DNA from: Oculina patagonica
Lineage: Eukaryota
Assembly: GCF_052425735.1 (NCBI RefSeq)
Contig: NC_135768.1
Span: 13,082,001-13,146,000, forward strand
Length of the DNA stretch: 64,000 bases
Direction of reading: 5' to 3'
In this document: in pieces, positions 1,438-18,388 of the stretch
Numbering within the stretch: position 1 is the first letter of the stretch
Layout: every line of letters starts with the position of its first letter
The notes under the pieces: generated by a model
Seen by the model: the letters and a program-made list of their open reading frames with translations, nothing else
What the model was told of the DNA's origin: nothing
The model's database searches: none
Program-made: the position numbers and the translations under genes

Positions 1438-1458
1438 TTATTACTCAAAAAAATATGT

Positions 1459-1835
1459 TCAATAAAAAAATTCTGTGCCGTAAGGGTGGCGATGAGAAAT
1501 AACAATAACAAGAACTCCCCCGTTCGCCCTTTCACATCTTTAGAAGCAGCGCAGTCGTCGAGGATGATAAGCGTGTTCGCACCCTCAAAAAGAAATCTTG
1601 AAAGCTTTAACCAAGATTCAACCTCGTGCTGCTCGCAAATGAAAACAAAAAATCGAAGATCTTCCTCAGCAAAGCGATAATAAGTCTTGTTGTGCGCGAA
1701 AGTCGGGCATATGAGCACGATGTAGTCAAACTTGCCTCGGAAAGGGCCACAAAGCTGATTGACCACGTACCTTGTTTTTCCTGAGTTTGTTGGTCCCACA
1801 ATGAGGGCGTTGAAGGGAATATTGGAAGGATCCAT
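1459..1835 (-). pseudogene. A32/FtsK-HerA-type genome packaging ATPase, internally deleted and frameshifted (copy 1)
   Basis: Walker A GPTNSGKT and Walker B LIILDD are present. The frame becomes nonsense after KGRTGE, the Arg-finger (xRH) and sensor (TQ) motifs are missing, and a plausible native C-terminus (..VISHRHPYGTEFFY*) lies in another frame ending at 1459. Confidence 0.8.
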
Positions 1836-1866
1836 GTCAGAACAGAACTTCGTTTGCGTTCGTATA

Positions 1867-3120
1867 TTATAAAAGCACAGATTCTAACTGCCTGTTAATT
1901 ATGTTCATCTGGGCGTCGCTGATTACGTAAATGTGGCAGTTCAAATTACCTGAGCCGCTTGTTTTCCTCTCTAGCTCAAGCTGGACACCGTCCTTTGTGT
2001 TCACAAGGCGCTTGCCGCTTCCGTGCATCGAGTGGTCAGCCATGGAACGCAGATCAATCAGAAGGCCGAACTTGTCTTCTGTGTAAAACTTTTGCAGGGT
2101 CATGTGCTGCGTTTTATTTTTTTCTTTCATGTAGAATCTTTTAACTTCTTCCCATATGTCCATTCCTTCGATGCCGTTGTTGTACAGCATGTTTGGCGAG
2201 CCGTTGACAGTGACGCTTACTTTTGTAAGGTCTGGGTTAATGTACTTTTCCGAGATCCTTGCACCTTTTGCATATTGCTCTATAAAAAGTAGCAAGATAC
2301 CTTTTAGGGACCTCCTCTGAGGGTTGACCTTAAGATTCAGACGTGTGTCGGATCCTTTTGCAAAAGTAACAACTTCGGCACGCTGGATGTGGTCGTAAGC
2401 GAACTCTTTGCCGCCCGAGTAAGCGCTGAATGCCTCATCTGCAATTTCTTTGCTTCTTATCATCTCGTACTCCAGCTGGATGTTTGTCAGCTTGTATTTC
2501 AGTTTTGTTGCATCTGAGCCTCTTACAACATGTTCGGCTGCCGCGAGCTTCAGTTCAAAAACAAGATCGTTGTATAGTGCCTGAGGATAAAATGCCCCGT
2601 GGTCAGTTAAAATCTGGTGATCCAGACGGATCCGGTATTTATTTCCATATAGCTCATTCAGCTTTTTTTCTGCTTCGACTCCTGAAGTTTTCTTATCGCC
2701 AGCATTTGAGCGAATTTTGTTGAGGTCCTCGCTCTGAATGCCCTCTGGCACCCTGTCGTCGCGCTCCTCCTGCGAAAGGAAAAAATCCTCAAATATTTTG
2801 TAGATGTCATAGCCAACCGTGTCCTGCACGACGGTGCCTTCGTACTTTACAACAAACTTGTCGACCAGAGCTCGGCTGACGTTGTCAACCAGAAAGTTGT
2901 TGGCATGGCCTCCGCTCAAGTCGATGTTGAAGCGCAGCGCCAGCGAGCCAGGCACAATGACCTCGTTTTCGTTCAGCTTTGGCACCGAAACATACAGAGT
3001 TTCCTCTGGATTGGCTTCAGTGCGGTCAAAAGTGATTCGTTTTACAGCGCGCTCGGCTTTCAGTGCGCCGAGTATTTTCTCTGTGCGTCCCGGTCGAAGG
3101 TTTTCTTGAACAGCAGCCAT
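1867..3120 (-). CDS. Putative major capsid protein (double jelly-roll, Polinton/PLV type), 417 aa, copy 1
   Basis: Size and beta-strand-rich pattern (LYVSVP..VIVPGSLALRFNIDL; KYKLTNIQLEYEMI; RSLKGILLLF; KFGLLIDLRS); adjacent to the packaging ATPase. Confidence 0.75.
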   Translation of the reverse strand: MAAVQENLRPGRTEKILGALKAERAVKRITFDRTEANPEETLYVSVPKLNENEVIVPGSLALRFNIDLSGGHANNFLVDNVSRALVDKFVVKYEGTVVQDTVGYDIYKIFEDFFLSQEERDDRVPEGIQSEDLNKIRSNAGDKKTSGVEAEKKLNELYGNKYRIRLDHQILTDHGAFYPQALYNDLVFELKLAAAEHVVRGSDATKLKYKLTNIQLEYEMIRSKEIADEAFSAYSGGKEFAYDHIQRAEVVTFAKGSDTRLNLKVNPQRRSLKGILLLFIEQYAKGARISEKYINPDLTKVSVTVNGSPNMLYNNGIEGMDIWEEVKRFYMKEKNKTQHMTLQKFYTEDKFGLLIDLRSMADHSMHGSGKRLVNTKDGVQLELERKTSGSGNLNCHIYVISDAQMNIINRQLESVLL

Positions 3121-3182
3121 CTCTCGATTGGTTTTATTGTTAAATTGAAAAGTTTAATTTGAAAATATATATAAATTACGTG

Positions 3183-4613
3183 ATGGCAACAGGTGGTGGT
3201 GATTTTGGATTCGAGGACCCTGATTTGGACCAAGATCTTGACCACAACAGTGATAACGATGATGAAGAGGAACAAGAGGTCGACACAACCCGACCATTTC
3301 AGCCCGGTTGGGTATCCACACCATACCATCGGGGTGAACAACACGAAATGCAAACGATGCAGCACGAACAGAGCGGGCTGCCAGAAACATCCTACGACGA
3401 AACACCTTTGCTTGAAAGAACCCCTTCAATAAGTGATCTTCAAAATGAAAGTAATTTGCGACAAAAACTAAAAAAAGCAGTAGACATGATAAAAGGCAAA
3501 TTTCCCAAAGCAAACTTTGAAAAAATAAAAATCAGAAGAGGCAAAGGGAAAAATGAGGGTAAAATTGTTGCTGTAGGAACAAAAAAAGGCGAGTACAAGA
3601 TTCTAAAAGAAAATGAGTCAGGCTTCATGAAAAGCTTTTTAGACAGCTTCAAAGATGAACTTGGGCCGTCAGCTGAAGATCTTATTGCTCAAGACAATGA
3701 GAGCATAAGAGATGAACGCCAAAGATTAAGAGAAGCTGAACGCCAAAGATTAAGAGAAGCTGAAAAACAACTTCAAGAGGCCCAAAAACTCGCATCGGAA
3801 AAAGAAAAAGCCGCCCTAGAAGTGCAAGATCTGAGAAACAGAATCGAGCGAACTCAAGCTCAGATTGAAGCACTTACTCAAGAACACGGTTCGAATCTTG
3901 AAAGTGATTCAGAACTACGGAGACTGCAGCAACTGAAAAAAAATTATCAAAAGGATCTTGACAACGCGAAAAAAGAGGTGGTAGCCATTGAAAAACAATC
4001 GAAGCAGAAGACAAAAGAACAAACACGGGTCGACCAACTCAGGGCAAGCCTCGCTGCCAAAGAGAGAGAAAGAAACACTTTGCAAGAAAGGCTCAACGAC
4101 ACAAGAGCGTTGGATGATCTAAAAGAGCAAGAAGCCGAGCTGAAGCGACAAAACGATGAAGATCAAGCAGTAATACAGGATGAAAATACCTCCCCCACTG
4201 ACAAACAAGCTGCTGAAGAAAGAGTTGCTGAAAGAACCGAGGAGCTCGCGCGTTTGCAAACGCAGATTGCGGAAAGAGAAAGGGCGCTTCCACTTCGTGA
4301 GAGAATCAAAGAGATCTTCAAAAAAAATGGCGTGACAGTAACAGCAATCTTTCTTGCTGCTGGTGTCACGATTGGTGCTGTAATTGGTGCCATTACAAAC
4401 TCTTTGAAGGCTACCGGCAAAGCGTTGGGGAAAGGCTTAAGTGATGTTGGCTCAAAGGTGGCATCAGCTCTGCCCGGTCTTATTGGCTCGATTGTAAGTT
4501 TTCTTTTCAAAACAGCTGGTCAAGTAATTGGCTTTCTTGCAGAGCACACCTGGCTGCTTATACTTGCTGCGGTTGCTTTTCTTGTTGAAAGATACATCAA
4601 GAAGAGACGTTAA
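3183..4613 (+). CDS. 476-aa protein: acidic N-terminus, long coiled coil, C-terminal hydrophobic/amphipathic helices (candidate membrane-penetration or tape-measure-like protein), copy 1
   Basis: ATG at 3183 (ORF-track start at 3159 is non-ATG); E/K/Q/R heptads; GVTVTAIFLAAGVTIGAVIGAI and WLLILAAVAFLV segments; ERQRLREA in-frame duplication. Confidence 0.8.
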   Translation: MATGGGDFGFEDPDLDQDLDHNSDNDDEEEQEVDTTRPFQPGWVSTPYHRGEQHEMQTMQHEQSGLPETSYDETPLLERTPSISDLQNESNLRQKLKKAVDMIKGKFPKANFEKIKIRRGKGKNEGKIVAVGTKKGEYKILKENESGFMKSFLDSFKDELGPSAEDLIAQDNESIRDERQRLREAERQRLREAEKQLQEAQKLASEKEKAALEVQDLRNRIERTQAQIEALTQEHGSNLESDSELRRLQQLKKNYQKDLDNAKKEVVAIEKQSKQKTKEQTRVDQLRASLAAKERERNTLQERLNDTRALDDLKEQEAELKRQNDEDQAVIQDENTSPTDKQAAEERVAERTEELARLQTQIAERERALPLRERIKEIFKKNGVTVTAIFLAAGVTIGAVIGAITNSLKATGKALGKGLSDVGSKVASALPGLIGSIVSFLFKTAGQVIGFLAEHTWLLILAAVAFLVERYIKKRR

Positions 4614-5860
4614 CGCATAAGGGCGTAGAGCAAAGCTGCAGCTCCAACCGCACCAACAGCGATAGTTGCTTTGTTTATTTCGTGTGTATCATTGACTTCG
4701 ACCTTTGTAGCTTTAGCGCTTTGCGCGCTTTCAGCTTCAGCACCTTCGGTGCTCGTTGGTGCCGGAGTTTTTTTTGTGTCCCTTTGAGACTCCTTGTGTA
4801 TAGGATTTGAAGGGTGGCTGTTTGGTGGGTTTACCTTTGATGGTCCTCCGGCCATCAGTTTAAGAGCTGCTTTTTTTGTTGATTTATTAACATCATTATT
4901 CAATCCTATTTTCATTCCTGCTACAGCCTGCTTCAGCTGATTGTTGTAGCCGACAACGCTTTCTGTGTTTATCACCATACTACCCGGCATCAGCCAGGCA
5001 CCAGGGCAGACAGCAAGGTTAAGCCGAACCTTCGCTTCATCGATAGAAAGTTGGTATCTTTGAACTGACTTTGCCAGATCTGGTTGCCTTATAGCGTCTT
5101 CAACCAACACGAGGAACTCACTTTGAGCCTCCTTTGCGCGGCCGCCTGTGCCAAGTATGCTACTTCGAACGTTGACCTGCGAACCCAGAATACAGTAGAC
5201 AAAAGCCTCTATCGACTGGTTTACTCTCGACAAACCTGCCTGAGTCAGACCTTCTGCGGCGTTAGGACAAAACCAGTCTGCCTGTGCATATGCAGCGTCG
5301 TCTGGCTCGATATATTGAATTAAGTTACCCTTGCTTGCAGCTCCCCCTTCGTCCGAAAATTTATCGTAATCGGGGTATTTTGCTCCAGAATTTTTTGGTC
5401 CAATGTTAGTAAACCAGATATAAACATCACCAAGCCCATGATTGGCGCCTCTTGTGAAACGAAAATCGCTTGACGGGTCGACACCGAACTCAGCGCATAT
5501 TCTTTTATACGAAGCCACGTCGTACTTGTTGTCGAACTGGCTAAACGTTGGGTCGCCTGGCAAGGCGCTTACGCTCTGAATTCCGCCCATCTGAAACAAT
5601 ATTCGCCTTATTGTAAAATAAACGTGAAAAAGGTAAAAATTACGCACAACAGGTGGCAAACTGAGAGCTGAGTGTTCTTCATCAAAAATTTCACGACTTA
5701 TCCCACTGCCTGTTGTCGCGCACCAGACAGCAAAGTTAAGTTGTTGAGGCCAGTAGCCAATATTTGGACTAGCAAGCCACCTTTTTGACTCTTTTCCTGA
5801 TGTATGCTTCAGTTTTGTTTTTTGAAAAATCTCTCTTAATTTCGTTGTGAAATATTGATC
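4610..5860 (-). pseudogene. 5'-truncated copy of the 571-aa gene
   Basis: Identical to 14180-15430 but lacks the promoter and first ~155 codons because of the tandem junction. Confidence 0.85.
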
Positions 5861-6222
5861 AATATTGAAATATTGAACAGACTTGCGGCTTTCGTAAAAA
5901 GAGTGAGCGCGCTGTCGATAAGATTTTCTGTGGTCTTGGCCCCAACATACGCTTCGTACCTCTTGAAGTACTTTTCGACGTCTTTCTCGGTCAAGCGCTT
6001 TACCTGCTCGTGAGTTAGCTGCACACCGATTGCTTCTTTAGACTTGCCTGTTGAAACAAGTCTTGCAAGCTGTTCACGTAAAGCTGGAATGTCAGGTCCC
6101 GCTGCTTGCATCTCTGACGGCATACTGCCTGGTTCAGGTTCAAGCAATTCCATTACGGACGTTTCCAACATAATTCGTTCACTTGCAGTGATATCGGTGG
6201 AAGTTGCGAACGGGTCAGCCAT
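5836..6222 (-). pseudogene. 3'-truncated copy of the 186-aa gene (reads through filler to NISILINISQRN*)
   Basis: Identical N-terminus to 877-1437 up to the breakpoint at 5875. Confidence 0.85.
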
Positions 6223-6243
6223 TTATTACTCAAAAAAATATGT

Positions 6244-6620
6244 TCAATAAAAAAATTCTGTGCCGTAAGGGTGGCGATGAGAAATAACAATAACAAGAAC
6301 TCCCCCGTTCGCCCTTTCACATCTTTAGAAGCAGCGCAGTCGTCGAGGATGATAAGCGTGTTCGCACCCTCAAAAAGAAATCTTGAAAGCTTTAACCAAG
6401 ATTCAACCTCGTGCTGCTCGCAAATGAAAACAAAAAATCGAAGATCTTCCTCAGCAAAGCGATAATAAGTCTTGTTGTGCGCGAAAGTCGGGCATATGAG
6501 CACGATGTAGTCAAACTTGCCTCGGAAAGGGCCACAAAGCTGATTGACCACGTACCTTGTTTTTCCTGAGTTTGTTGGTCCCACAATGAGGGCGTTGAAG
6601 GGAATATTGGAAGGATCCAT
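6244..6620 (-). pseudogene. Deleted packaging ATPase, copy 2
   Basis: Same translation as copy 1. Confidence 0.8.
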
Positions 6621-6651
6621 GTCAGAACAGAACTTCGTTTGCGTTCGTATA

Positions 6652-7905
6652 TTATAAAAGCACAGATTCTAACTGCCTGTTAATTATGTTCATCTGGGCG
6701 TCGCTGATTACGTAAATGTGGCAGTTCAAATTACCTGAGCCGCTTGTTTTCCTCTCTAGCTCAAGCTGGACACCGTCCTTTGTGTTCACAAGGCGCTTGC
6801 CGCTTCCGTGCATCGAGTGGTCAGCCATGGAACGCAGATCAATCAGAAGGCCGAACTTGTCTTCTGTGTAAAACTTTTGCAGGGTCATGTGCTGCGTTTT
6901 ATTTTTTTCTTTCATGTAGAATCTTTTAACTTCTTCCCATATGTCCATTCCTTCGATGCCGTTGTTGTACAGCATGTTTGGCGAGCCGTTGACAGTGACG
7001 CTTACTTTTGTAAGGTCTGGGTTAATGTACTTTTCCGAGATCCTTGCACCTTTTGCATATTGCTCTATAAAAAGTAGCAAGATACCTTTTAGGGACCTCC
7101 TCTGAGGGTTGACCTTAAGATTCAGACGTGTGTCGGATCCTTTTGCAAAAGTAACAACTTCGGCACGCTGGATGTGGTCGTAAGCGAACTCTTTGCCGCC
7201 CGAGTAAGCGCTGAATGCCTCATCTGCAATTTCTTTGCTTCTTATCATCTCGTACTCCAGCTGGATGTTTGTCAGCTTGTATTTCAGTTTTGTTGCATCT
7301 GAGCCTCTTACAACATGTTCGGCTGCCGCGAGCTTCAGTTCAAAAACAAGATCGTTGTATAGTGCCTGAGGATAAAATGCCCCGTGGTCAGTTAAAATCT
7401 GGTGATCCAGACGGATCCGGTATTTATTTCCATATAGCTCATTCAGCTTTTTTTCTGCTTCGACTCCTGAAGTTTTCTTATCGCCAGCATTTGAGCGAAT
7501 TTTGTTGAGGTCCTCGCTCTGAATGCCCTCTGGCACCCTGTCGTCGCGCTCCTCCTGCGAAAGGAAAAAATCCTCAAATATTTTGTAGATGTCATAGCCA
7601 ACCGTGTCCTGCACGACGGTGCCTTCGTACTTTACAACAAACTTGTCGACCAGAGCTCGGCTGACGTTGTCAACCAGAAAGTTGTTGGCATGGCCTCCGC
7701 TCAAGTCGATGTTGAAGCGCAGCGCCAGCGAGCCAGGCACAATGACCTCGTTTTCGTTCAGCTTTGGCACCGAAACATACAGAGTTTCCTCTGGATTGGC
7801 TTCAGTGCGGTCAAAAGTGATTCGTTTTACAGCGCGCTCGGCTTTCAGTGCGCCGAGTATTTTCTCTGTGCGTCCCGGTCGAAGGTTTTCTTGAACAGCA
7901 GCCAT
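6652..7905 (-). CDS. Putative major capsid protein, copy 2
   Basis: Identical protein to 1867-3120. Confidence 0.75.
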   Translation of the reverse strand: MAAVQENLRPGRTEKILGALKAERAVKRITFDRTEANPEETLYVSVPKLNENEVIVPGSLALRFNIDLSGGHANNFLVDNVSRALVDKFVVKYEGTVVQDTVGYDIYKIFEDFFLSQEERDDRVPEGIQSEDLNKIRSNAGDKKTSGVEAEKKLNELYGNKYRIRLDHQILTDHGAFYPQALYNDLVFELKLAAAEHVVRGSDATKLKYKLTNIQLEYEMIRSKEIADEAFSAYSGGKEFAYDHIQRAEVVTFAKGSDTRLNLKVNPQRRSLKGILLLFIEQYAKGARISEKYINPDLTKVSVTVNGSPNMLYNNGIEGMDIWEEVKRFYMKEKNKTQHMTLQKFYTEDKFGLLIDLRSMADHSMHGSGKRLVNTKDGVQLELERKTSGSGNLNCHIYVISDAQMNIINRQLESVLL

Positions 7906-7967
7906 CTCTCGATTGGTTTTATTGTTAAATTGAAAAGTTTAATTTGAAAATATATATAAATTACGTG

Positions 7968-9398
7968 ATGGCAACAGGTGGTGGTGATTTTGGATTCGAG
8001 GACCCTGATTTGGACCAAGATCTTGACCACAACAGTGATAACGATGATGAAGAGGAACAAGAGGTCGACACAACCCGACCATTTCAGCCCGGTTGGGTAT
8101 CCACACCATACCATCGGGGTGAACAACACGAAATGCAAACGATGCAGCACGAACAGAGCGGGCTGCCAGAAACATCCTACGACGAAACACCTTTGCTTGA
8201 AAGAACCCCTTCAATAAGTGATCTTCAAAATGAAAGTAATTTGCGACAAAAACTAAAAAAAGCAGTAGACATGATAAAAGGCAAATTTCCCAAAGCAAAC
8301 TTTGAAAAAATAAAAATCAGAAGAGGCAAAGGGAAAAATGAGGGTAAAATTGTTGCTGTAGGAACAAAAAAAGGCGAGTACAAGATTCTAAAAGAAAATG
8401 AGTCAGGCTTCATGAAAAGCTTTTTAGACAGCTTCAAAGATGAACTTGGGCCGTCAGCTGAAGATCTTATTGCTCAAGACAATGAGAGCATAAGAGATGA
8501 ACGCCAAAGATTAAGAGAAGCTGAACGCCAAAGATTAAGAGAAGCTGAAAAACAACTTCAAGAGGCCCAAAAACTCGCATCGGAAAAAGAAAAAGCCGCC
8601 CTAGAAGTGCAAGATCTGAGAAACAGAATCGAGCGAACTCAAGCTCAGATTGAAGCACTTACTCAAGAACACGGTTCGAATCTTGAAAGTGATTCAGAAC
8701 TACGGAGACTGCAGCAACTGAAAAAAAATTATCAAAAGGATCTTGACAACGCGAAAAAAGAGGTGGTAGCCATTGAAAAACAATCGAAGCAGAAGACAAA
8801 AGAACAAACACGGGTCGACCAACTCAGGGCAAGCCTCGCTGCCAAAGAGAGAGAAAGAAACACTTTGCAAGAAAGGCTCAACGACACAAGAGCGTTGGAT
8901 GATCTAAAAGAGCAAGAAGCCGAGCTGAAGCGACAAAACGATGAAGATCAAGCAGTAATACAGGATGAAAATACCTCCCCCACTGACAAACAAGCTGCTG
9001 AAGAAAGAGTTGCTGAAAGAACCGAGGAGCTCGCGCGTTTGCAAACGCAGATTGCGGAAAGAGAAAGGGCGCTTCCACTTCGTGAGAGAATCAAAGAGAT
9101 CTTCAAAAAAAATGGCGTGACAGTAACAGCAATCTTTCTTGCTGCTGGTGTCACGATTGGTGCTGTAATTGGTGCCATTACAAACTCTTTGAAGGCTACC
9201 GGCAAAGCGTTGGGGAAAGGCTTAAGTGATGTTGGCTCAAAGGTGGCATCAGCTCTGCCCGGTCTTATTGGCTCGATTGTAAGTTTTCTTTTCAAAACAG
9301 CTGGTCAAGTAATTGGCTTTCTTGCAGAGCACACCTGGCTGCTTATACTTGCTGCGGTTGCTTTTCTTGTTGAAAGATACATCAAGAAGAGACGTTAA
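7968..9398 (+). CDS. Coiled-coil membrane protein, copy 2
   Basis: Identical protein to 3183-4613. Confidence 0.8.
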   Translation: MATGGGDFGFEDPDLDQDLDHNSDNDDEEEQEVDTTRPFQPGWVSTPYHRGEQHEMQTMQHEQSGLPETSYDETPLLERTPSISDLQNESNLRQKLKKAVDMIKGKFPKANFEKIKIRRGKGKNEGKIVAVGTKKGEYKILKENESGFMKSFLDSFKDELGPSAEDLIAQDNESIRDERQRLREAERQRLREAEKQLQEAQKLASEKEKAALEVQDLRNRIERTQAQIEALTQEHGSNLESDSELRRLQQLKKNYQKDLDNAKKEVVAIEKQSKQKTKEQTRVDQLRASLAAKERERNTLQERLNDTRALDDLKEQEAELKRQNDEDQAVIQDENTSPTDKQAAEERVAERTEELARLQTQIAERERALPLRERIKEIFKKNGVTVTAIFLAAGVTIGAVIGAITNSLKATGKALGKGLSDVGSKVASALPGLIGSIVSFLFKTAGQVIGFLAEHTWLLILAAVAFLVERYIKKRR

Positions 9399-10645
9399 CG
9401 CATAAGGGCGTAGAGCAAAGCTGCAGCTCCAACCGCACCAACAGCGATAGTTGCTTTGTTTATTTCGTGTGTATCATTGACTTCGACCTTTGTAGCTTTA
9501 GCGCTTTGCGCGCTTTCAGCTTCAGCACCTTCGGTGCTCGTTGGTGCCGGAGTTTTTTTTGTGTCCCTTTGAGACTCCTTGTGTATAGGATTTGAAGGGT
9601 GGCTGTTTGGTGGGTTTACCTTTGATGGTCCTCCGGCCATCAGTTTAAGAGCTGCTTTTTTTGTTGATTTATTAACATCATTATTCAATCCTATTTTTAT
9701 TCCTGCTACAGCCTGCTTCAGCTGATTGTTGTAGCCGACAACGCTTTCTGTGTTTATCACCATACTACCCGGCATCAGCCAGGCACCAGGGCAGACAGCA
9801 AGGTTAAGCCGAACCTTCGCTTCATCGATAGAAAGTTGGTATCTTTGAACTGACTTTGCCAGATCTGGTTGCCTTATAGCGTCTTCAACCAACACGAGGA
9901 ACTCACTTTGAGCCTCCTTTGCGCGGCCGCCTGTGCCAAGTATGCTACTTCGAACGTTGACCTGCGAACCCAGAATACAGTAGACAAAAGCCTCTATCGA
10001 CTGGTTTACTCTCGACAAACCTGCCTGAGTCAGACCTTCTGCGGCGTTAGGACAAAACCAGTCTGCCTGTGCATATGCAGCGTCGTCTGGCTCGATATAT
10101 TGAATTAAGTTACCCTTGCTTGCAGCTCCCCCTTCGTCCGAAAATTTATCGTAATCGGGGTATTTTGCTCCAGAATTTTTTGGTCCAATGTTAGTAAACC
10201 AGATATAAACATCACCAAGCCCATGATTGGCGCCTCTTGTGAAACGAAAATCGCTTGACGGGTCGACACCGAACTCAGCGCATATTCTTTTATACGAAGC
10301 CACGTCGTACTTGTTGTCGAACTGGCTAAACGTTGGGTCGCCTGGCAAGGCGCTTACGCTCTGAATTCCGCCCATCTGAAACAATATTCGCCTTATTGTA
10401 AAATAAACGTGAAAAAGGTAAAAATTACGCACAACAGGTGGCAAACTGAGAGCTGAGTGTTCTTCATCAAAAATTTCACGACTTATCCCACTGCCTGTTG
10501 TCGCGCACCAGACAGCAAAGTTAAGTTGTTGAGGCCAGTAGCCAATATTTGGACTAGCAAGCCACCTTTTTGACTCTTTTCCTGATGTATGCTTCAGTTT
10601 TGTTTTTTGAAAAATCTCTCTTAATTTCGTTGTGAAATATTGATC
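9395..10645 (-). pseudogene. 5'-truncated copy of the 571-aa gene (carries the C>T variant at 9698, M>I)
   Basis: Repeat unit 2; AGIKIG versus AGMKIG in the other copies. Confidence 0.85.
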
Positions 10646-11007
10646 AATATTGAAATATTGAACAGACTTGCGGCTTTCGTAAAAAGAGTGAGCGCGCTGT
10701 CGATAAGATTTTCTGTGGTCTTGGCCCCAACATACGCTTCGTACCTCTTGAAGTACTTTTCGACGTCTTTCTCGGTCAAGCGCTTTACCTGCTCGTGAGT
10801 TAGCTGCACACCGATTGCTTCTTTAGACTTGCCTGTTGAAACAAGTCTTGCAAGCTGTTCACGTAAAGCTGGAATGTCAGGTCCCGCTGCTTGCATCTCT
10901 GACGGCATACTGCCTGGTTCAGGTTCAAGCAATTCCATTACGGACGTTTCCAACATAATTCGTTCACTTGCAGTGATATCGGTGGAAGTTGCGAACGGGT
11001 CAGCCAT
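10621..11007 (-). pseudogene. 3'-truncated copy of the 186-aa gene
   Basis: As 5836-6222. Confidence 0.85.
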
Positions 11008-11028
11008 TTATTACTCAAAAAAATATGT

Positions 11029-11405
11029 TCAATAAAAAAATTCTGTGCCGTAAGGGTGGCGATGAGAAATAACAATAACAAGAACTCCCCCGTTCGCCCT
11101 TTCACATCTTTAGAAGCAGCGCAGTCGTCGAGGATGATAAGCGTGTTCGCACCCTCAAAAAGAAATCTTGAAAGCTTTAACCAAGATTCAACCTCGTGCT
11201 GCTCGCAAATGAAAACAAAAAATCGAAGATCTTCCTCAGCAAAGCGATAATAAGTCTTGTTGTGCGCGAAAGTCGGGCATATGAGCACGATGTAGTCAAA
11301 CTTGCCTCGGAAAGGGCCACAAAGCTGATTGACCACGTACCTTGTTTTTCCTGAGTTTGTTGGTCCCACAATGAGGGCGTTGAAGGGAATATTGGAAGGA
11401 TCCAT
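11029..11405 (-). pseudogene. Deleted packaging ATPase, copy 3
   Basis: Same translation as copy 1. Confidence 0.8.
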
Positions 11406-11436
11406 GTCAGAACAGAACTTCGTTTGCGTTCGTATA

Positions 11437-12690
11437 TTATAAAAGCACAGATTCTAACTGCCTGTTAATTATGTTCATCTGGGCGTCGCTGATTACGTAA
11501 ATGTGGCAGTTCAAATTACCTGAGCCGCTTGTTTTCCTCTCTAGCTCAAGCTGGACACCGTCCTTTGTGTTCACAAGGCGCTTGCCGCTTCCGTGCATCG
11601 AGTGGTCAGCCATGGAACGCAGATCAATCAGAAGGCCGAACTTGTCTTCTGTGTAAAACTTTTGCAGGGTCATGTGCTGCGTTTTATTTTTTTCTTTCAT
11701 GTAGAATCTTTTAACTTCTTCCCATATGTCCATTCCTTCGATGCCGTTGTTGTACAGCATGTTTGGCGAGCCGTTGACAGTGACGCTTACTTTTGTAAGG
11801 TCTGGGTTAATGTACTTTTCCGAGATCCTTGCACCTTTTGCATATTGCTCTATAAAAAGTAGCAAGATACCTTTTAGGGACCTCCTCTGAGGGTTGACCT
11901 TAAGATTCAGACGTGTGTCGGATCCTTTTGCAAAAGTAACAACTTCGGCACGCTGGATGTGGTCGTAAGCGAACTCTTTGCCGCCCGAGTAAGCGCTGAA
12001 TGCCTCATCTGCAATTTCTTTGCTTCTTATCATCTCGTACTCCAGCTGGATGTTTGTCAGCTTGTATTTCAGTTTTGTTGCATCTGAGCCTCTTACAACA
12101 TGTTCGGCTGCCGCGAGCTTCAGTTCAAAAACAAGATCGTTGTATAGTGCCTGAGGATAAAATGCCCCGTGGTCAGTTAAAATCTGGTGATCCAGACGGA
12201 TCCGGTATTTATTTCCATATAGCTCATTCAGCTTTTTTTCTGCTTCGACTCCTGAAGTTTTCTTATCGCCAGCATTTGAGCGAATTTTGTTGAGGTCCTC
12301 GCTCTGAATGCCCTCTGGCACCCTGTCGTCGCGCTCCTCCTGCGAAAGGAAAAAATCCTCAAATATTTTGTAGATGTCATAGCCAACCGTGTCCTGCACG
12401 ACGGTGCCTTCGTACTTTACAACAAACTTGTCGACCAGAGCTCGGCTGACGTTGTCAACCAGAAAGTTGTTGGCATGGCCTCCGCTCAAGTCGATGTTGA
12501 AGCGCAGCGCCAGCGAGCCAGGCACAATGACCTCGTTTTCGTTCAGCTTTGGCACCGAAACATACAGAGTTTCCTCTGGATTGGCTTCAGTGCGGTCAAA
12601 AGTGATTCGTTTTACAGCGCGCTCGGCTTTCAGTGCGCCGAGTATTTTCTCTGTGCGTCCCGGTCGAAGGTTTTCTTGAACAGCAGCCAT
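11437..12690 (-). CDS. Putative major capsid protein, copy 3
   Basis: Identical protein to 1867-3120. Confidence 0.75.
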   Translation of the reverse strand: MAAVQENLRPGRTEKILGALKAERAVKRITFDRTEANPEETLYVSVPKLNENEVIVPGSLALRFNIDLSGGHANNFLVDNVSRALVDKFVVKYEGTVVQDTVGYDIYKIFEDFFLSQEERDDRVPEGIQSEDLNKIRSNAGDKKTSGVEAEKKLNELYGNKYRIRLDHQILTDHGAFYPQALYNDLVFELKLAAAEHVVRGSDATKLKYKLTNIQLEYEMIRSKEIADEAFSAYSGGKEFAYDHIQRAEVVTFAKGSDTRLNLKVNPQRRSLKGILLLFIEQYAKGARISEKYINPDLTKVSVTVNGSPNMLYNNGIEGMDIWEEVKRFYMKEKNKTQHMTLQKFYTEDKFGLLIDLRSMADHSMHGSGKRLVNTKDGVQLELERKTSGSGNLNCHIYVISDAQMNIINRQLESVLL

Positions 12691-12752
12691 CTCTCGATTG
12701 GTTTTATTGTTAAATTGAAAAGTTTAATTTGAAAATATATATAAATTACGTG

Positions 12753-14183
12753 ATGGCAACAGGTGGTGGTGATTTTGGATTCGAGGACCCTGATTTGGAC
12801 CAAGATCTTGACCACAACAGTGATAACGATGATGAAGAGGAACAAGAGGTCGACACAACCCGACCATTTCAGCCCGGTTGGGTATCCACACCATACCATC
12901 GGGGTGAACAACACGAAATGCAAACGATGCAGCACGAACAGAGCGGGCTGCCAGAAACATCCTACGACGAAACACCTTTGCTTGAAAGAACCCCTTCAAT
13001 AAGTGATCTTCAAAATGAAAGTAATTTGCGACAAAAACTAAAAAAAGCAGTAGACATGATAAAAGGCAAATTTCCCAAAGCAAACTTTGAAAAAATAAAA
13101 ATCAGAAGAGGCAAAGGGAAAAATGAGGGTAAAATTGTTGCTGTAGGAACAAAAAAAGGCGAGTACAAGATTCTAAAAGAAAATGAGTCAGGCTTCATGA
13201 AAAGCTTTTTAGACAGCTTCAAAGATGAACTTGGGCCGTCAGCTGAAGATCTTATTGCTCAAGACAATGAGAGCATAAGAGATGAACGCCAAAGATTAAG
13301 AGAAGCTGAACGCCAAAGATTAAGAGAAGCTGAAAAACAACTTCAAGAGGCCCAAAAACTCGCATCGGAAAAAGAAAAAGCCGCCCTAGAAGTGCAAGAT
13401 CTGAGAAACAGAATCGAGCGAACTCAAGCTCAGATTGAAGCACTTACTCAAGAACACGGTTCGAATCTTGAAAGTGATTCAGAACTACGGAGACTGCAGC
13501 AACTGAAAAAAAATTATCAAAAGGATCTTGACAACGCGAAAAAAGAGGTGGTAGCCATTGAAAAACAATCGAAGCAGAAGACAAAAGAACAAACACGGGT
13601 CGACCAACTCAGGGCAAGCCTCGCTGCCAAAGAGAGAGAAAGAAACACTTTGCAAGAAAGGCTCAACGACACAAGAGCGTTGGATGATCTAAAAGAGCAA
13701 GAAGCCGAGCTGAAGCGACAAAACGATGAAGATCAAGCAGTAATACAGGATGAAAATACCTCCCCCACTGACAAACAAGCTGCTGAAGAAAGAGTTGCTG
13801 AAAGAACCGAGGAGCTCGCGCGTTTGCAAACGCAGATTGCGGAAAGAGAAAGGGCGCTTCCACTTCGTGAGAGAATCAAAGAGATCTTCAAAAAAAATGG
13901 CGTGACAGTAACAGCAATCTTTCTTGCTGCTGGTGTCACGATTGGTGCTGTAATTGGTGCCATTACAAACTCTTTGAAGGCTACCGGCAAAGCGTTGGGG
14001 AAAGGCTTAAGTGATGTTGGCTCAAAGGTGGCATCAGCTCTGCCCGGTCTTATTGGCTCGATTGTAAGTTTTCTTTTCAAAACAGCTGGTCAAGTAATTG
14101 GCTTTCTTGCAGAGCACACCTGGCTGCTTATACTTGCTGCGGTTGCTTTTCTTGTTGAAAGATACATCAAGAAGAGACGTTAA
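12753..14183 (+). CDS. Coiled-coil membrane protein, copy 3
   Basis: Identical protein to 3183-4613. Confidence 0.8.
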   Translation: MATGGGDFGFEDPDLDQDLDHNSDNDDEEEQEVDTTRPFQPGWVSTPYHRGEQHEMQTMQHEQSGLPETSYDETPLLERTPSISDLQNESNLRQKLKKAVDMIKGKFPKANFEKIKIRRGKGKNEGKIVAVGTKKGEYKILKENESGFMKSFLDSFKDELGPSAEDLIAQDNESIRDERQRLREAERQRLREAEKQLQEAQKLASEKEKAALEVQDLRNRIERTQAQIEALTQEHGSNLESDSELRRLQQLKKNYQKDLDNAKKEVVAIEKQSKQKTKEQTRVDQLRASLAAKERERNTLQERLNDTRALDDLKEQEAELKRQNDEDQAVIQDENTSPTDKQAAEERVAERTEELARLQTQIAERERALPLRERIKEIFKKNGVTVTAIFLAAGVTIGAVIGAITNSLKATGKALGKGLSDVGSKVASALPGLIGSIVSFLFKTAGQVIGFLAEHTWLLILAAVAFLVERYIKKRR

Positions 14184-15895
14184 CGCATAAGGGCGTAGAG
14201 CAAAGCTGCAGCTCCAACCGCACCAACAGCGATAGTTGCTTTGTTTATTTCGTGTGTATCATTGACTTCGACCTTTGTAGCTTTAGCGCTTTGCGCGCTT
14301 TCAGCTTCAGCACCTTCGGTGCTCGTTGGTGCCGGAGTTTTTTTTGTGTCCCTTTGAGACTCCTTGTGTATAGGATTTGAAGGGTGGCTGTTTGGTGGGT
14401 TTACCTTTGATGGTCCTCCGGCCATCAGTTTAAGAGCTGCTTTTTTTGTTGATTTATTAACATCATTATTCAATCCTATTTTCATTCCTGCTACAGCCTG
14501 CTTCAGCTGATTGTTGTAGCCGACAACGCTTTCTGTGTTTATCACCATACTACCCGGCATCAGCCAGGCACCAGGGCAGACAGCAAGGTTAAGCCGAACC
14601 TTCGCTTCATCGATAGAAAGTTGGTATCTTTGAACTGACTTTGCCAGATCTGGTTGCCTTATAGCGTCTTCAACCAACACGAGGAACTCACTTTGAGCCT
14701 CCTTTGCGCGGCCGCCTGTGCCAAGTATGCTACTTCGAACGTTGACCTGCGAACCCAGAATACAGTAGACAAAAGCCTCTATCGACTGGTTTACTCTCGA
14801 CAAACCTGCCTGAGTCAGACCTTCTGCGGCGTTAGGACAAAACCAGTCTGCCTGTGCATATGCAGCGTCGTCTGGCTCGATATATTGAATTAAGTTACCC
14901 TTGCTTGCAGCTCCCCCTTCGTCCGAAAATTTATCGTAATCGGGGTATTTTGCTCCAGAATTTTTTGGTCCAATGTTAGTAAACCAGATATAAACATCAC
15001 CAAGCCCATGATTGGCGCCTCTTGTGAAACGAAAATCGCTTGACGGGTCGACACCGAACTCAGCGCATATTCTTTTATACGAAGCCACGTCGTACTTGTT
15101 GTCGAACTGGCTAAACGTTGGGTCGCCTGGCAAGGCGCTTACGCTCTGAATTCCGCCCATCTGAAACAATATTCGCCTTATTGTAAAATAAACGTGAAAA
15201 AGGTAAAAATTACGCACAACAGGTGGCAAACTGAGAGCTGAGTGTTCTTCATCAAAAATTTCACGACTTATCCCACTGCCTGTTGTCGCGCACCAGACAG
15301 CAAAGTTAAGTTGTTGAGGCCAGTAGCCAATATTTGGACTAGCAAGCCACCTTTTTGACTCTTTTCCTGATGTATGCTTCAGTTTTGTTTTTTGAAAAAT
15401 CTCTCTTAATTTCGTTGTGAAATATTGATCTGGTGTTACGTAGATGTTGATTTTGCTGTTAAATATTTTTTTCAAACTCGGTGCGGCTTCGTGAAATCCA
15501 ACCGCGGGAATTGGTAAAGATGCGCCTTTTGCGCCGCTTGGTGACAGCTGTTGTGGAAAACCGCCTGAAATTTGATTCACCCCCAGTGCTTTTTTCATCT
15601 CTGGGCTCCAATATTTGCTGTCAGAGCCAAAAACATTTATCAAATGGCCTTGCTCTGCCTTGTAATAAATGTCTGCCGTTGCTGTGTGGTTGTACGCGAA
15701 CTCAACCTGTGCAACAAATTTTGTTCGGTCAGCGTTTGGATATTTTGCAAGAAAAGGTTTCCATGCCTTGTCTTTTGCCGCTTCAGAAATTGTAGTTGCT
15801 TCTGGGGTTTTCATCCACTTCATAAAATCTCTTTCTTTGGAATCAAGAAAAATTGATTGAGAAATGTCATCAGCTCTCGGAATAGGCGGAGCCAT
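14180..15895 (-). CDS. 571-aa uncharacterised viral protein with C-terminal TM anchor (only full-length copy)
   Basis: Long ORF with ATG in TAAAATG context; conserved-looking core WPQQLNFAVWCATTG..FHVYFTIRRIL; Pro/Ser/Ala linker then IAVGAVGAAALLYALMR tail anchor. Confidence 0.8.
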   Translation of the reverse strand: MAPPIPRADDISQSIFLDSKERDFMKWMKTPEATTISEAAKDKAWKPFLAKYPNADRTKFVAQVEFAYNHTATADIYYKAEQGHLINVFGSDSKYWSPEMKKALGVNQISGGFPQQLSPSGAKGASLPIPAVGFHEAAPSLKKIFNSKINIYVTPDQYFTTKLREIFQKTKLKHTSGKESKRWLASPNIGYWPQQLNFAVWCATTGSGISREIFDEEHSALSLPPVVRNFYLFHVYFTIRRILFQMGGIQSVSALPGDPTFSQFDNKYDVASYKRICAEFGVDPSSDFRFTRGANHGLGDVYIWFTNIGPKNSGAKYPDYDKFSDEGGAASKGNLIQYIEPDDAAYAQADWFCPNAAEGLTQAGLSRVNQSIEAFVYCILGSQVNVRSSILGTGGRAKEAQSEFLVLVEDAIRQPDLAKSVQRYQLSIDEAKVRLNLAVCPGAWLMPGSMVINTESVVGYNNQLKQAVAGMKIGLNNDVNKSTKKAALKLMAGGPSKVNPPNSHPSNPIHKESQRDTKKTPAPTSTEGAEAESAQSAKATKVEVNDTHEINKATIAVGAVGAAALLYALMR

Positions 15896-15935
15896 TTTAT
15901 ATTAAAGATTTATTTTTCAAAAGATAATTATAAAG

Positions 15936-16619
15936 ATGGTTGTGCTCACTGTCACCACAACAAAAAATCCGAAAACTGTTTATTTTGACCAGCCTATTCC
16001 TAAACCGAGCTATATCCGGCTGCTAAGTTGTTCTCTTTACAACAGCTGGAATAGTTTGGAAGAGGATGGAATAGTTTCTTACAAAAAAGGGAACGAGGAA
16101 AAGGAGGAAATGCGTTTTATACGGCAAGGAAACTACTCACTCGACGACATTGGGGATATTTTTGAAAAAGGATTTCCAGAGAAAAATATGTTTTCTGTAA
16201 AAAAAGGCATTACGGGTCGTTCCTTAATAATAAAAGCAAACGAGGCCAAAATTAAAACTTTTAGACTGAATGAAAGTCTTATTAAGTTCTTAAATCTGTG
16301 GGTTCTTAGTGATACTGATTTTCTTAATCAAATTGTGGTAAATAATGTTTCAAATCCTAAAAATTACTTCATCAACTGTGACCTTATTGACAAGCAACAA
16401 AGCTTGCTAAATGGTAAGCCTTCAAGCCTTTTAGCTTGTTTTGACATACGAGGGAAACCGTATGAAAAAATTCATTACCAAAATAAGCATCTTAACGTCT
16501 TGCGCGACGTTGCGGCTGAAGAAAATGTATCATCTCTGACTCTTTCGATAAGAGATGAAAATGAAAATCTATTCGAATTTAACGGCTTAAATCTTGCATA
16601 TGAGATAGAATTAAATTAA
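15936..16619 (+). CDS. Putative minor capsid protein / penton (single jelly-roll), 227 aa
   Basis: Motifs typical of Polinton/PLV pentons: IRLLSCSLYNSW, YFINCDLID..NGKPSSLLACF, SSLTLSIRDEN..FNG. Confidence 0.75.
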   Translation: MVVLTVTTTKNPKTVYFDQPIPKPSYIRLLSCSLYNSWNSLEEDGIVSYKKGNEEKEEMRFIRQGNYSLDDIGDIFEKGFPEKNMFSVKKGITGRSLIIKANEAKIKTFRLNESLIKFLNLWVLSDTDFLNQIVVNNVSNPKNYFINCDLIDKQQSLLNGKPSSLLACFDIRGKPYEKIHYQNKHLNVLRDVAAEENVSSLTLSIRDENENLFEFNGLNLAYEIELN

Positions 16620-16654
16620 ATTAAATACAAAAATAAAATTAAAAGTATACGACC

Positions 16655-17353
16655 ATGTCTTCAGCTAACGTGCTCCCAAGTGCACCTGCGTTTGGTGTTT
16701 GTGCAGAAGACAGCGTAAAACACGCGGAAATACAAACACTGTATCCCGCTTTGCCAAATCAACCAGAAAACTTTAGGTTAACAAAAATCAATCAAATTTG
16801 TTCAGAGTTTGACAAAGAAGTTGTAAAATACCGAGCTGTTTTGAAAAAGTATAAAAAGGTGAAGTCTGTTTTCCATTATTCCGCAATTTCAATGGGTGGT
16901 TTGTCCAGTGTTCTCTCTGCTTCCAGTCTTGGCACCGCGGTAACGGTCGTTGGTTTGCCGGTAAGCGTTCCTCTCGCTGCATGTGCTGCCATTACAGGCG
17001 TCTTGTCTGCCGCTTTCACTGGAGCGAGCAAAAAACTTGAACCAAAAATTATGAAAAATAATGAAATTACTTCGCTTGCTGTTGCCAAACGTGAAACTGT
17101 CAATAGACTTGTTTCTGCCGCTCTCATTGACAATAAAGTTGATGACAAAGAGTTTAAAATTATTTTGGATGAATATTCTCGTTACATGGCCCTCAAAGAG
17201 ACTGTTCGCAGGCACCTTACAAAAAATTTAAGCCAAAAAAAGTCATCCCCACAGCCTGACATTGAGAAACTGAGACAGGAAATTCGACAAGAAGAATTGG
17301 CTTGGTTAAAAAAAAGAATATCAGCAGAGTCGAAATCAGATTTGAGAAAATAA
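16655..17353 (+). CDS. 232-aa protein with central hydrophobic hairpin flanked by helices (membrane-active family seen in Polinton-like elements)
   Basis: LYP.LP..FRL.KI..KKYKK motif, Gly/Ala/Ser-rich hydrophobic stretch, VSAALIDNKVDDKEFKIILDEY; AATAAA at 17349 and 17382. Confidence 0.7.
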   Translation: MSSANVLPSAPAFGVCAEDSVKHAEIQTLYPALPNQPENFRLTKINQICSEFDKEVVKYRAVLKKYKKVKSVFHYSAISMGGLSSVLSASSLGTAVTVVGLPVSVPLAACAAITGVLSAAFTGASKKLEPKIMKNNEITSLAVAKRETVNRLVSAALIDNKVDDKEFKIILDEYSRYMALKETVRRHLTKNLSQKKSSPQPDIEKLRQEIRQEELAWLKKRISAESKSDLRK

Positions 17354-17395
17354 ACACTGGATTTAATCTGAGTGTTCAGAAAAATAAAATTAACG

Positions 17396-17482
17396 CATGA
17401 CACAAATCGTGACATTGTGTTACACACAGCGTGACATTGTGTGACACAGAGCGTTACAGTCACGCGTGACGTTGCGTGACAG
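17396..17482. repeat. Phased GT(G/T)AC repeat array, spacing 10-13 bp
   Basis: T(G/T)AC cores at 17398, 17410, 17420, 17432, 17442, 17454, 17467, 17477; palindrome GTCACGCGTGAC at 17459-17470. Confidence 0.8.
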
Positions 17483-17497
17483 GTCAAACGAAAGGGC

Positions 17498-17799
17498 AAA
17501 ACCCTGGTCGGGGGGTGCTCGTTGGCTGTTTCTTGCCTAGCCCCGGCTAGGACTTTTCCCCGCCGCTGACAAGGCGGCTGTCCCGCATTTTTACCTCTGC
17601 CGAGGTTTGAAATCCCGAGGGATTTCTGAGCACCCCCACGTTATCAGTAGGGCCGAGGCGGGTTCACCCAGGGGTATCTCCCACTGAAAGGAGTCCCCCT
17701 ATACCCCGTAATTCACCATCCGCACAAGCCATTATAACAGGATTCAAGTGGTTGGCCATCCACTACCTCCCTTGACTTCACCAGAATTTGTGAACTAAC
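17498..17799 (-). ncRNA. Candidate ~300-nt structured non-coding RNA encoded by the element
   Basis: GC-rich and lacking any long ORF. A 10-bp closing helix (17511-17520/17628-17637) encloses four perfect hairpins; further stem 17671-17677/17701-17707. Upstream PSE-like + TATA; the first T4 on the minus strand falls right after the closing helix. Confidence 0.55.
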
Positions 17800-17821
17800 A
17801 AAAAGTTACGGCCGCGTTAAC

Positions 17822-17920
17822 TTATATATAGTTCACTTTGTCACATTTTTCACTTGTGGTACCCTTTCACCTATTTTGAGCAAGTACGCATGCGCTTTTG
17901 GGCATCAGGATGATGTCATC
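17822..17920 (-). promoter_or_regulatory. TATA box (TATATATAA 17830-17822), PSE-like GGTACCACAAGTGAAAAATGTG (17863-17842), NRF1-like ACGCATGCGC (17886-17895), CRE-like TGATGTCA (17911-17918)
   Basis: Motifs read directly; PSE-TATA spacing is close to that of U6-type promoters; Inr-like TTAGTT at 17798-17793. Confidence 0.5.
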
Positions 17921-18388
17921 ATTAATTAGACACTTGGTAAAGTTTGGTAAATAGGCTAAAATGTTGGTTCTTTTCCAAGCGATTTGCTTTATTTTAACCG
18001 AACTTTCTACTCCCGTTTGGCAAAATGAGGTCAGACAGATAACATATCAAGTCGTGGAAGCAATGCTTGAAGCAGAAAAAAAATAAACAGGCCCGATTGA
18101 GTCCGATGTTTCGGGAAAGTTCTTTCGATCGATCGATAAACTTCTGTGATCAAATCCTGTTATTTCTCGATTTCTTCTCTTCGCTTCACTTCGCCAGCTT
18201 CTGTGGGGGCACAAAAAATTACAGCGCGTTAACTGAGCGTATTTTTTTTTGTAATATCTGTTCTGTTTCGTTTTTTATCGGCCCAAACACTAAATCCTGA
18301 TTAGGCCGCCATGTTTTCTTCCTGCTCGTCCAAGGGCCTGAGAACTAAAAATATGGTTTCCAGACTCTCTCTGAAAATGTCACGCAAC

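Follow-up and report, generated by a model that had tools for sequence, protein, structure and literature searches.

Small structured RNAs encoded by viruses are an already known kind of RNA. The adenovirus virus-associated (VA) RNAs I and II are about 160 nt long, form a long imperfect duplex and are transcribed from internal A/B-box (type 2) promoters. The Epstein-Barr virus (EBV)-encoded RNAs (EBERs) and the Herpesvirus saimiri U RNAs (HSURs) come from vertebrate herpesviruses and act as protein-binding ribonucleoproteins (RNPs). The EBERs also need internal boxes, and the HSURs carry Sm sites and small nuclear RNA (snRNA) 3' boxes. The packaging RNA (pRNA) of phi29, a bacterial virus, is 120-174 nt long. 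Several groups of eukaryotic DNA viruses are thought to descend from Polintons/Mavericks and their relatives. The stretch analysed here, called the window, comprises 64,000 nt of Oculina patagonica DNA (contig NC_135768.1, positions 13,082,001 to 13,146,000, forward strand; positions below are those of the window) and contains the right part of a Polinton-type virus-like element. We put a probability of roughly 60% on the reading that 17498-17863 on the minus strand is an autonomous accessory cassette for a structured noncoding RNA (ncRNA) of about 300 nt, present in one sub-clade of coral Polintons; a trans-acting scaffold or decoy role is assigned to it with low confidence.

Searches for known RNAs were negative. 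Rfam 15, which includes 7SK, RNase P/MRP, SRP, the snRNAs, vault, Y, ribozymes and pRNA, gave 0 hits in the window at the gathering thresholds. With permissive settings, no Rfam hit was obtained with E up to 10 in 17300-18100 or with E up to 5 in 11 homologous loci, VA and EBER families included. The matches that did appear were at chance level, namely SCARNA7 (17.7 bits versus a threshold of 65, on the strand opposite to the RNA) and HOTTIP_3 (E = 3). A tRNA scan with ARAGORN returned nothing, and a literature search on Polinton ncRNAs returned nothing relevant. The statement in the original prediction that no such RNA had been described for Polintons is thus borne out by Rfam and by the literature search, and the predicted RNA is likely to represent a new family of virus-encoded ncRNAs.

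The predicted GC-rich island and its helices are present in the window. The GC content is 0.551 in 17498-17800 and 0.375-0.43 in the flanks. The closing helix (17511-17520 / 17628-17637), the hairpins inside it and the further stems at 17671-17707, 17747-17764 and 17777-17794 were all found where they had been placed. In the hairpin 17536-17551, only 2 nt lie between the arms, so its innermost pair is impossible. The minus strand (302 nt) folds with -126.1 kcal/mol (z = -3.41, 0 of 100 shuffles as stable), versus -104.1 kcal/mol (z = -2.14) for the plus strand. The longest helix is about 10-11 bp in both the minimum free energy (MFE) fold and the conserved fold. The structured module exceeds chance, and its fold recurs with compensatory substitutions in about 50 homologous loci.

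These loci, numbered with an L, were collected in two ways. L001-L006 came from look-ups of the neighbouring genes. A pattern scan of metagenome contigs gave 74 loci, about 45 of which are true homologues from coral samples and the rest chance matches in GC-rich bacterial sequence. An exact-pattern scan of IMG/VR gave no match. R1, a covariance model of the 3' domain, found exactly one copy in each of 50 loci, with 135 bits in the window and 116-160 bits in the 49 others. A host short interspersed element or another dispersed repeat was considered as well and rejected, there being one copy per locus and no second copy of the module in the 64-kb window. The sequences were aligned by G-INS-i, and helices outside R1 were counted by script.

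The fold covaries among the homologues. Across the whole RNA, compensatory variants could be read from named loci in at least 10 helices, and the signal was quantified in the 3' domain. There, 97.9% of the cells are paired, versus 27-50% with slid partners; both-side changes were counted at 4 pairs and 20 cells, versus 1.4 and 3.7 in shuffles; and the covariation score was higher than in all 500 shuffles. The hairpin 17609-17626 reads GAAAUCC/GGAUUUC in the window, GAGAUCC/GGAUCUC in L008 and GAGGUCC/GGACCUC in L043. The hairpin 17536-17551 reads CCUAGC/GCUAGG in the window, CCUAAC/GUUAGG in L040, L041 and L044, and CCUACC/GGUAGG in L005. ACCUC/GAGGU of the hairpin 17593-17606 is replaced by ACCCC/GGGGU in L002. 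The loop of this last hairpin pairs with a downstream stretch, and the pairing is kept through the variants UCCCA/UGGGA (L018), UCCCG/CGGGA (L040), CCG/CGG (L013) and CUG/CAG (L036). This second stem is 86% paired versus 12-67% when slid, with two pairs counted as AU:23/GC:10 and CG:35/UA:3. The first loop would be 1-2 nt long and the third 4-5 nt and A-rich, and an H-type pseudoknot in the 3' domain is probable from these sequences.

In the central domain, the tip hairpin of the three-way junction keeps its pairs while its sequence changes completely between lineages (CUCC/GGAG in the window, GCCG/CGGC in L008, ACCG/CGGU in L013, UGUCU/AGACA in L015), and one of its pairs is GC in 12, AU in 10 and UA in 6. 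The stem-loop of the 5' domain, 17747-17764, covaries at 3 of 4 pairs (AGUGG/CCACU in the window, GAGG/CCUC in L018, CAGG/CCUG in L005 and L015, GAUGG/CCAUC in L012, GGGG/CCCC in L040), and the helix outside it changes from GGA/UCC, the form of most loci, to GGG/CCC in L002, L005 and L012. The 5' domain is closed by a long-range helix, P0, which begins 0-3 nt after the predicted start, pairs with the segment immediately 5' of the junction and spans about 75-90 nt. P0 reads GUUCAC/GUGAAU in the window and L047, UUAGCAAGC/GCUUGUUAG in L019, GAGAGC/GCUCUU in L034, GCAAUC/GAUUGU in L005 and GCGAAGC/GCUUUGU in L015. The cognate duplexes have a mean of -8.56 kcal/mol versus -5.03 when partners were permuted, and 2 of 20000 permutations were as good. 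An invariant GGCC lies in the loop of the 5' hairpin. The 5' strand of P0 also has an alternative local partner, in the window the hairpin 17777-17794. The local and the distal partners are alike within each lineage and change together between lineages. In sequence terms, the two pairings hint at a conformational switch.

The fold does not stand by itself in these genomes. Most loci have the cassette placed between the 232-aa gene and the small open reading frame (ORF) listed in Table 1. In L015, L016, L055 and L073, the whole cassette, from the repeats through the RNA, TATA box and upstream element to the palindrome, is inverted relative to the gene block, so that the stop of the 232-aa gene directly adjoins its promoter side. 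A homologue of the small ORF was not detected in these four loci. In L047, the cassette sits between an upstream homologue of the small ORF and a different downstream gene. Palindrome, upstream element, TATA box, fold, T run and repeats stay joined in all three contexts. The cassette is an autonomous unit; the promoter-like and terminator-like elements that had been predicted are conserved in place and move with the module.

Some relatives lack it. The RNA body is missing from L003, L004, L081 and L082 despite the shared gene order, and R1 finds no copy in the more distant L003 and L004. The cassette is absent from some close relatives, and therefore it is an accessory feature of one sub-clade. 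The regions without the RNA body are 660-934 in L081, 750-1170 in L082, 5630-6100 in L003 and 6340-6520 in L004. L081 retains the repeats and a short CAAAACC-TTGTC flank on the 3' side, followed by the small-ORF promoter. This arrangement points to loss through deletion, or else shows where the cassette inserted.

Along the RNA strand, the GCGCATGCG palindrome comes first among the promoter-like elements and is followed by a purine-rich stretch and the CCACAAGTG element. The TATA box comes about 20 nt later, and TTAG/TCAG lies 31-35 nt beyond TATA and leads into the first P0 strand. Both elements quoted in the original prediction are the reverse complements of 17842-17863 and 17822-17830. A canonical TATAAATA is found, on the minus strand only, in L008, L015, L034 and L073. 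An exact CCACAAGTG is present only once in the 64-kb window, and only two copies with one mismatch were seen within the element, at 697-705 and 913-921. Both in L047 and in the inverted lineage, the palindrome is still found at the promoter end of the cassette, and it may be an upstream element common to the RNA and small-ORF promoters. At the other end, T4-T5 is found 7-10 nt past the closing helix in 28 of 29 lineage clusters, often followed by a second T4-T7. The window copy of the module has only two minus-strand runs of T4 or longer, 17501-17498 and 17804-17800, the latter immediately ahead of the predicted start; its plus strand contains a T4 (17554-57) and a T5 (17588-92).

Which polymerase would read the cassette is less clear-cut. 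The CCACAAGTG element lies at the distance expected of a proximal sequence element (PSE), about -55, and is a candidate PSE by its position. A literature search for a cnidarian PSE gave nothing relevant, and neither the window nor 147 kb of coral loci yielded host snRNA genes for promoter comparison. The start motif TTAG/TCAG, 31-35 nt past TATA, resembles an RNA polymerase II (Pol II) initiator and suits Pol II as well as RNA polymerase III (Pol III). Inspection of the sequence shows no internal A/B boxes on the RNA strand; a single B-box-like string, GGGTTCACCC (17661-17670), belongs to the plus strand, which has internal T4/T5. The U6-type Pol III promoter of the original prediction is therefore kept in part: the TATA box and the terminal oligo-T are conserved in place, whereas most lineages have an internal T4 and an initiator-like start. 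Likewise, the absence of an internal T4 holds for the window and a few lineages, not for the 22 of 29 clusters described below. Between a type-3-like Pol III promoter and a Pol II promoter of the TATA/initiator or snRNA-like kind, the odds are about even.

Several features that work on one strand only favour a minus-strand RNA, and the TATA orientation and the T run past the closing helix described above point the same way. The pseudoknot is feasible only in the minus sense, because the plus strand would need a third loop of 1 nt. A lineage-specific inserted hairpin (L012, L026, L047, L066) is capped by C(UUCG)G, and the linker hairpin is closed by GNRA loops, GUGA in L012, L026 and L047 and GCAA in L015. 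The extension of P0 relies on G·U pairs, whose plus-strand counterparts would be A·C. In 11 of 12 lineages, the MFE is lower for the minus strand than for the plus strand, with means of -122.6 versus -115.2 kcal/mol and z of -2.38 versus -1.86.

With the fold conserved through compensatory changes and the cassette behaving as one unit, we infer transcription, its strand and the transcript ends from the sequence. A host RNA polymerase would be recruited by TATA, the fixed CCACAAGTG element and the GCGCATGCG palindrome, and would start 31-35 nt past TATA on TTAG/TCAG. The transcript would end at, or be trimmed to, the oligo-U 7-10 nt past the last helix. It would fold into three domains, namely the P0-closed 5' domain, the three-way junction and a 3' domain with a helix of about 10 bp around four hairpins and a probable H-type pseudoknot. 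The RNA would then act in trans as a stable protein-binding scaffold or decoy for the element. A scaffold or decoy is preferred to a mimic of double-stranded RNA (dsRNA) because of the many short helices, the invariant loops, the pseudoknot and the absence of a long duplex.

The following points weigh against this reading. A trans-acting RNP scaffold or decoy is the likeliest role with low confidence, as it was derived from the architecture only. The invariance of the closing helix is an ascertainment artefact and is not evidence, because the scan pattern required the exact helix. A kissing contact between the 5' hairpin loop and the linker (GUUGGC with GCCAAC) was tried and rejected, its invariant core being uninformative and its one variable pair mostly unpaired. 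G·U versus A·C counts have no significant strand bias (raw 65 versus 62; independent origins on the tree 49 versus 41), and this count is dominated by the decay of genomic copies, many of which are decaying insertions with CpG transitions. In 22 of 29 clusters, a T4 (T5 in L005) recurs at a constant position some 20 nt past the predicted start, between P0 and the 5' stem-loop and so inside the conserved fold, and 25 of 29 have an internal T4 of some sort. Most lineages carrying such a run conflicts with Pol III, and a Pol II 3'-end signal was not identified either.

The best-surviving alternative follows the original prediction, in which a U6/7SK-type (PSE + TATA) Pol III gene makes an abundant decoy like VA RNA or EBER, acting against dsRNA sensing or RNA interference. 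We regard it as rather unlikely. The spacing of TATA and upstream element is conserved, a fixed offset separates the oligo-T from the preceding terminal helix in 28 of 29 lineages, an internal T4 is missing from the window copy, and Polintons are related to adenoviruses, all of which would fit. Against it stand the T4 at about +20, the initiator-like start motif and the lack of an Rfam match to VA, EBER, 7SK, U6 or RNase P/MRP. A longest helix of about 10 bp is too short for a duplex-type decoy, and PKR, the classic VA target, is a vertebrate protein. The VA/EBER-like role is the part of the original prediction that finds no support, with no A/B boxes on the RNA strand, no long duplex (at most about 10-11 bp) and no Rfam VA match.

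Three further explanations are improbable to a similar degree. The RNA could be a Pol II TATA/initiator transcript whose structured part is a leader, for instance one spliced to structural mRNAs of the minus strand, or a regulatory long ncRNA, for instance one acting in antisense on the 227-aa and 232-aa genes. The TATA-to-TTAG/TCAG distance of 31-35 nt and the tolerance of Pol II for internal T4 agree with this, and a window transcript of this kind would continue antisense into 16655-17353. However, the RNA strand of the inverted lineage faces an ORF-free region and not the structural genes, and in L047 the neighbours differ. In addition, the fold ends exactly at the conserved T run, and no conserved splice donor or poly(A) signal was read in the downstream sequence.

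Alternatively, the module could be untranscribed DNA acting in cis, as an enhancer or binding platform beside the GTGAC-type repeats, as a fold of the displaced single strand in protein-primed replication, or as a packaging signal close to the genome end. Its location less than 900 bp from the element terminus and beside iteron-like repeats would suit such an element, as would the unbiased wobble statistics and hairpins that are mostly Watson-Crick on both strands. A P0 span of about 75-90 nt and a multi-branched, pseudoknotted fold nevertheless fit duplex DNA poorly, the UUCG and GNRA loops are RNA motifs, and the fold is bounded by promoter-like and terminator-like elements. The cassette also occurs in either orientation and in other positions, and is dispensable in close relatives.

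By analogy, the RNA might be an RNP scaffold with its own job in the life cycle, for example a 7SK-size mimic of a host regulatory RNA that retunes host transcription or a part for packaging or end recognition like phi29 pRNA; in that case, P0 and the local hairpin would be the two states of a conformational switch. Least probable is an RNA structure of the plus strand, either the 3' untranslated region (UTR) of the 232-aa mRNA or a long 5' UTR belonging to the small ORF: the plus strand folds too (z = -2.14) and the module lies between two plus-strand genes, but AATAAA/ATTAAA signals come ahead of the module, the small ORF has its own TATA-like box, the orientation to both genes flips in L015/L055 and the order is altered in L047, and on that strand the pseudoknot would have a 1-nt third loop and the P0 extension A·C mismatches.

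Table 1. Features of the RNA cassette and its surroundings, in window coordinates.
Feature	Position	Strand	Basis
Predicted ncRNA, ~300 nt; start ~17799-17797, oligo-U end 17501-17498	17498-17799	-	fold, TATA spacing, T run, homologues
5' domain: long-range helix P0 (17790-17797 with 17709-17716) around stem-loop 17747-17764 and outer helix	17709-17797	-	covariation, duplex energy
Central domain: three-way junction, stems in 17655-17707, linker hairpin 17639-17656	17639-17716	-	covariation
3' domain: closing helix, four hairpins and candidate H-type pseudoknot (~17580-17606)	17510-17638	-	model R1, covariation
Four hairpins inside the closing helix	17609-17626, 17593-17606, 17560-17578, 17536-17551	-	sequence, R1
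TATA box of the cassette	17822-17830	-	AT-rich TATA-like element, alignment position shared by nearly all lineages
Upstream promoter element, core CCACAAGTG at 17851-17859, ~20 nt 5' of TATA	17842-17863	-	position conserved across lineages
Palindrome ACGCATGCGC between RNA promoter and small-ORF promoter	17886-17895	.	conserved in most lineages
GTGAC/GTTAC-type repeat cluster beside the 3' end of the RNA gene	17380-17481	.	conserved in homologues
Upstream neighbour gene, 232 aa, membrane-type	16655-17353	+	served as probe for related loci
Small ORF, 41 aa, hydrophobic, own TATA-like box, AATAAA at end	17961-18086	+	tblastn
Conserved non-coding terminal region and right end of element	18087-18392	.	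homology stop at 18388-18392

The carrier, as judged from its genes, is a Polinton/Maverick-type virus-like element of stony corals. It enters the window already in progress, its left end and its own copy of the protein-primed family-B DNA polymerase (PolB) gene lying beyond the window edge. Relatives have PolB domains (PF03175) and an endonuclease VII domain 5' of the shared gene block (L046), and in L046 the PolB gene is broken into several ORFs. The window has an A32-like ORF that matches part of a packaging-ATPase profile (Pox_A32, E = 3.3e-5). A model of a 417-aa protein (AlphaFold, low-confidence, predicted local distance difference test score of 51) retrieves mainly double-jelly-roll capsid proteins with template modelling (TM) scores of 0.2-0.36, and the protein is a candidate double-jelly-roll capsid protein on that modelling; sequence searches of PDB and PHROGs with it gave no match. 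It is 99% identical to an Oculina patagonica protein. The discrete, conserved structured module inside a Polinton-type element that the original prediction proposed is thus found, on the grounds of the approximately 50 loci, PolB in the relatives, the A32-like ORF and the candidate capsid protein.

The right end of the element was placed where many independent copies lose homology to the window. Towards it lie, in order, the 232-aa gene, the GTGAC-type repeats, the structured region, an AT-rich promoter region, the 41-aa ORF and about 300 bp of conserved non-coding terminus. L001, an Oculina locus, has 92-96% DNA identity to the window over 14440-18392. The 232-aa protein has 153 homologues, the best being 93% identical and from Oculina patagonica, and an identity look-up of the window's own copy gave no record. 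The protein genes of the element have short AT-rich intergenic promoters, unlike the RNA cassette. The 41-aa ORF is a separate plus-strand gene outside the RNA gene; tblastn gave 51-100% identity in about 40 loci, and L002 shows synonymous differences.

The GTGAC-type repeat flank is kept in almost every copy with a readable flank. The repeats are reduced in L040, L041 and L044, with a short remnant only in L010, L034 and L065, and the cluster persists even in relatives that lack the RNA. The window has 10 copies of GCGTGAC where 3.2 are expected, 4 of them within 17429-17480. The 11-mer GTTGCGTGACA has exactly 2 copies in the 64 kb, in inverted orientation at 17471-17481 (plus) and 18378-18388 (minus). 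The pair brackets the last ~900 bp of the element, the second copy being 4 nt from the terminus, and L013, L029 and L053 have a third copy in the divergent promoter region 5' of the 227-aa gene. GTTGCGTGACA may be a factor-binding or recombination site, which could account for the cassette inversion in one lineage.

Other observations concern the genomic setting. A tandem array at 1090-15430 repeats a 4785-bp unit 2.997 times, and successive copies mismatch in only 2 columns. Each unit contains the A32-like ORF, the 417-aa capsid-like gene, a 484-aa coiled-coil gene and the C-terminal part of a 571-aa gene, which the array junction cuts to 349-aa versions in two units. The A32-like ORF (10938-11405, minus strand, and its array copies) encodes 155 aa and covers positions 12-107 of the 242-position profile, so its gene appears from the sequence to be interrupted at least once per unit. 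The array could be a true segmental triplication within the element or an assembly artefact. Just beyond the element end, a 186-aa ORF (18389-18949, minus strand) has a weak C2H2 zinc-finger match, and past it lies host DNA of lower GC without similarity to the related loci. This host flank has near-perfect palindromes or inverted repeats at 21464-21612, 24932-25238 and 29576-29686, with arms of 73, 46 and 54 nt, which are possibly miniature transposons.

In two related loci, L021 (32-212 / 14121-14301) and L046 (28-239), the copy is flanked by a 181-212-nt inverted repeat. The right repeat begins about 370 bp outside the homology-defined end, and may be either the true terminal repeat of that lineage or a repeat that hosts the insertion. 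L002 (1-4300) is a long-read metagenome contig of 2x coverage, in which an element fragment lies beside fragmented bacterial-type genes, including ABC transporter pieces, DUF6198 and a nucleoside deoxyribosyltransferase-like protein. This contig is probably chimeric.

If the cassette encodes such an RNA, an RNA component would be added to the biology of Polintons, and small-RNA genes would be an old feature of this virus realm and not peculiar to adenoviruses and herpesviruses. It would also provide a compact, testable model in an early-branching animal, for which the presence, absence and flipped orientation of the cassette among close relatives form a natural comparison set.

Among the known systems, phi29 pRNA is alike in being a structured RNA near one end of a linear protein-primed genome, with a three-way junction and loops that have the potential for RNA-RNA contact. 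It differs in its bacterial virus and its size and has no sequence match, and the likeness is a resemblance only, with a packaging role being without support here. The EBERs and HSURs share with the coral RNA the small viral RNA and the promoter architecture of host small RNAs, with upstream TATA-like and factor sites. The coral RNA is likened to these RNPs by architecture only, and neither the Sm sites nor the snRNA 3' boxes of the HSURs are recognised in it. The type-3 Pol III genes (U6, 7SK, RNase P/MRP) have no sequence or structure match to it, and most coral-element lineages are unlike them in having an internal T4. They are similar in the TATA box near -30, the conserved element near -45 to -66 and the oligo-T right after the terminal helix, and the predicted size is near that of 7SK or RNase P/MRP. 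Compared with VA RNA I/II, the coral RNA is longer (about 300 nt, predicted), has three domains in place of a long duplex, with helices of about 10 bp at most, and has its promoter elements upstream. The two are alike in being small structured viral ncRNAs of a Polinton-related virus lineage, each from a discrete gene ending in oligo-T.

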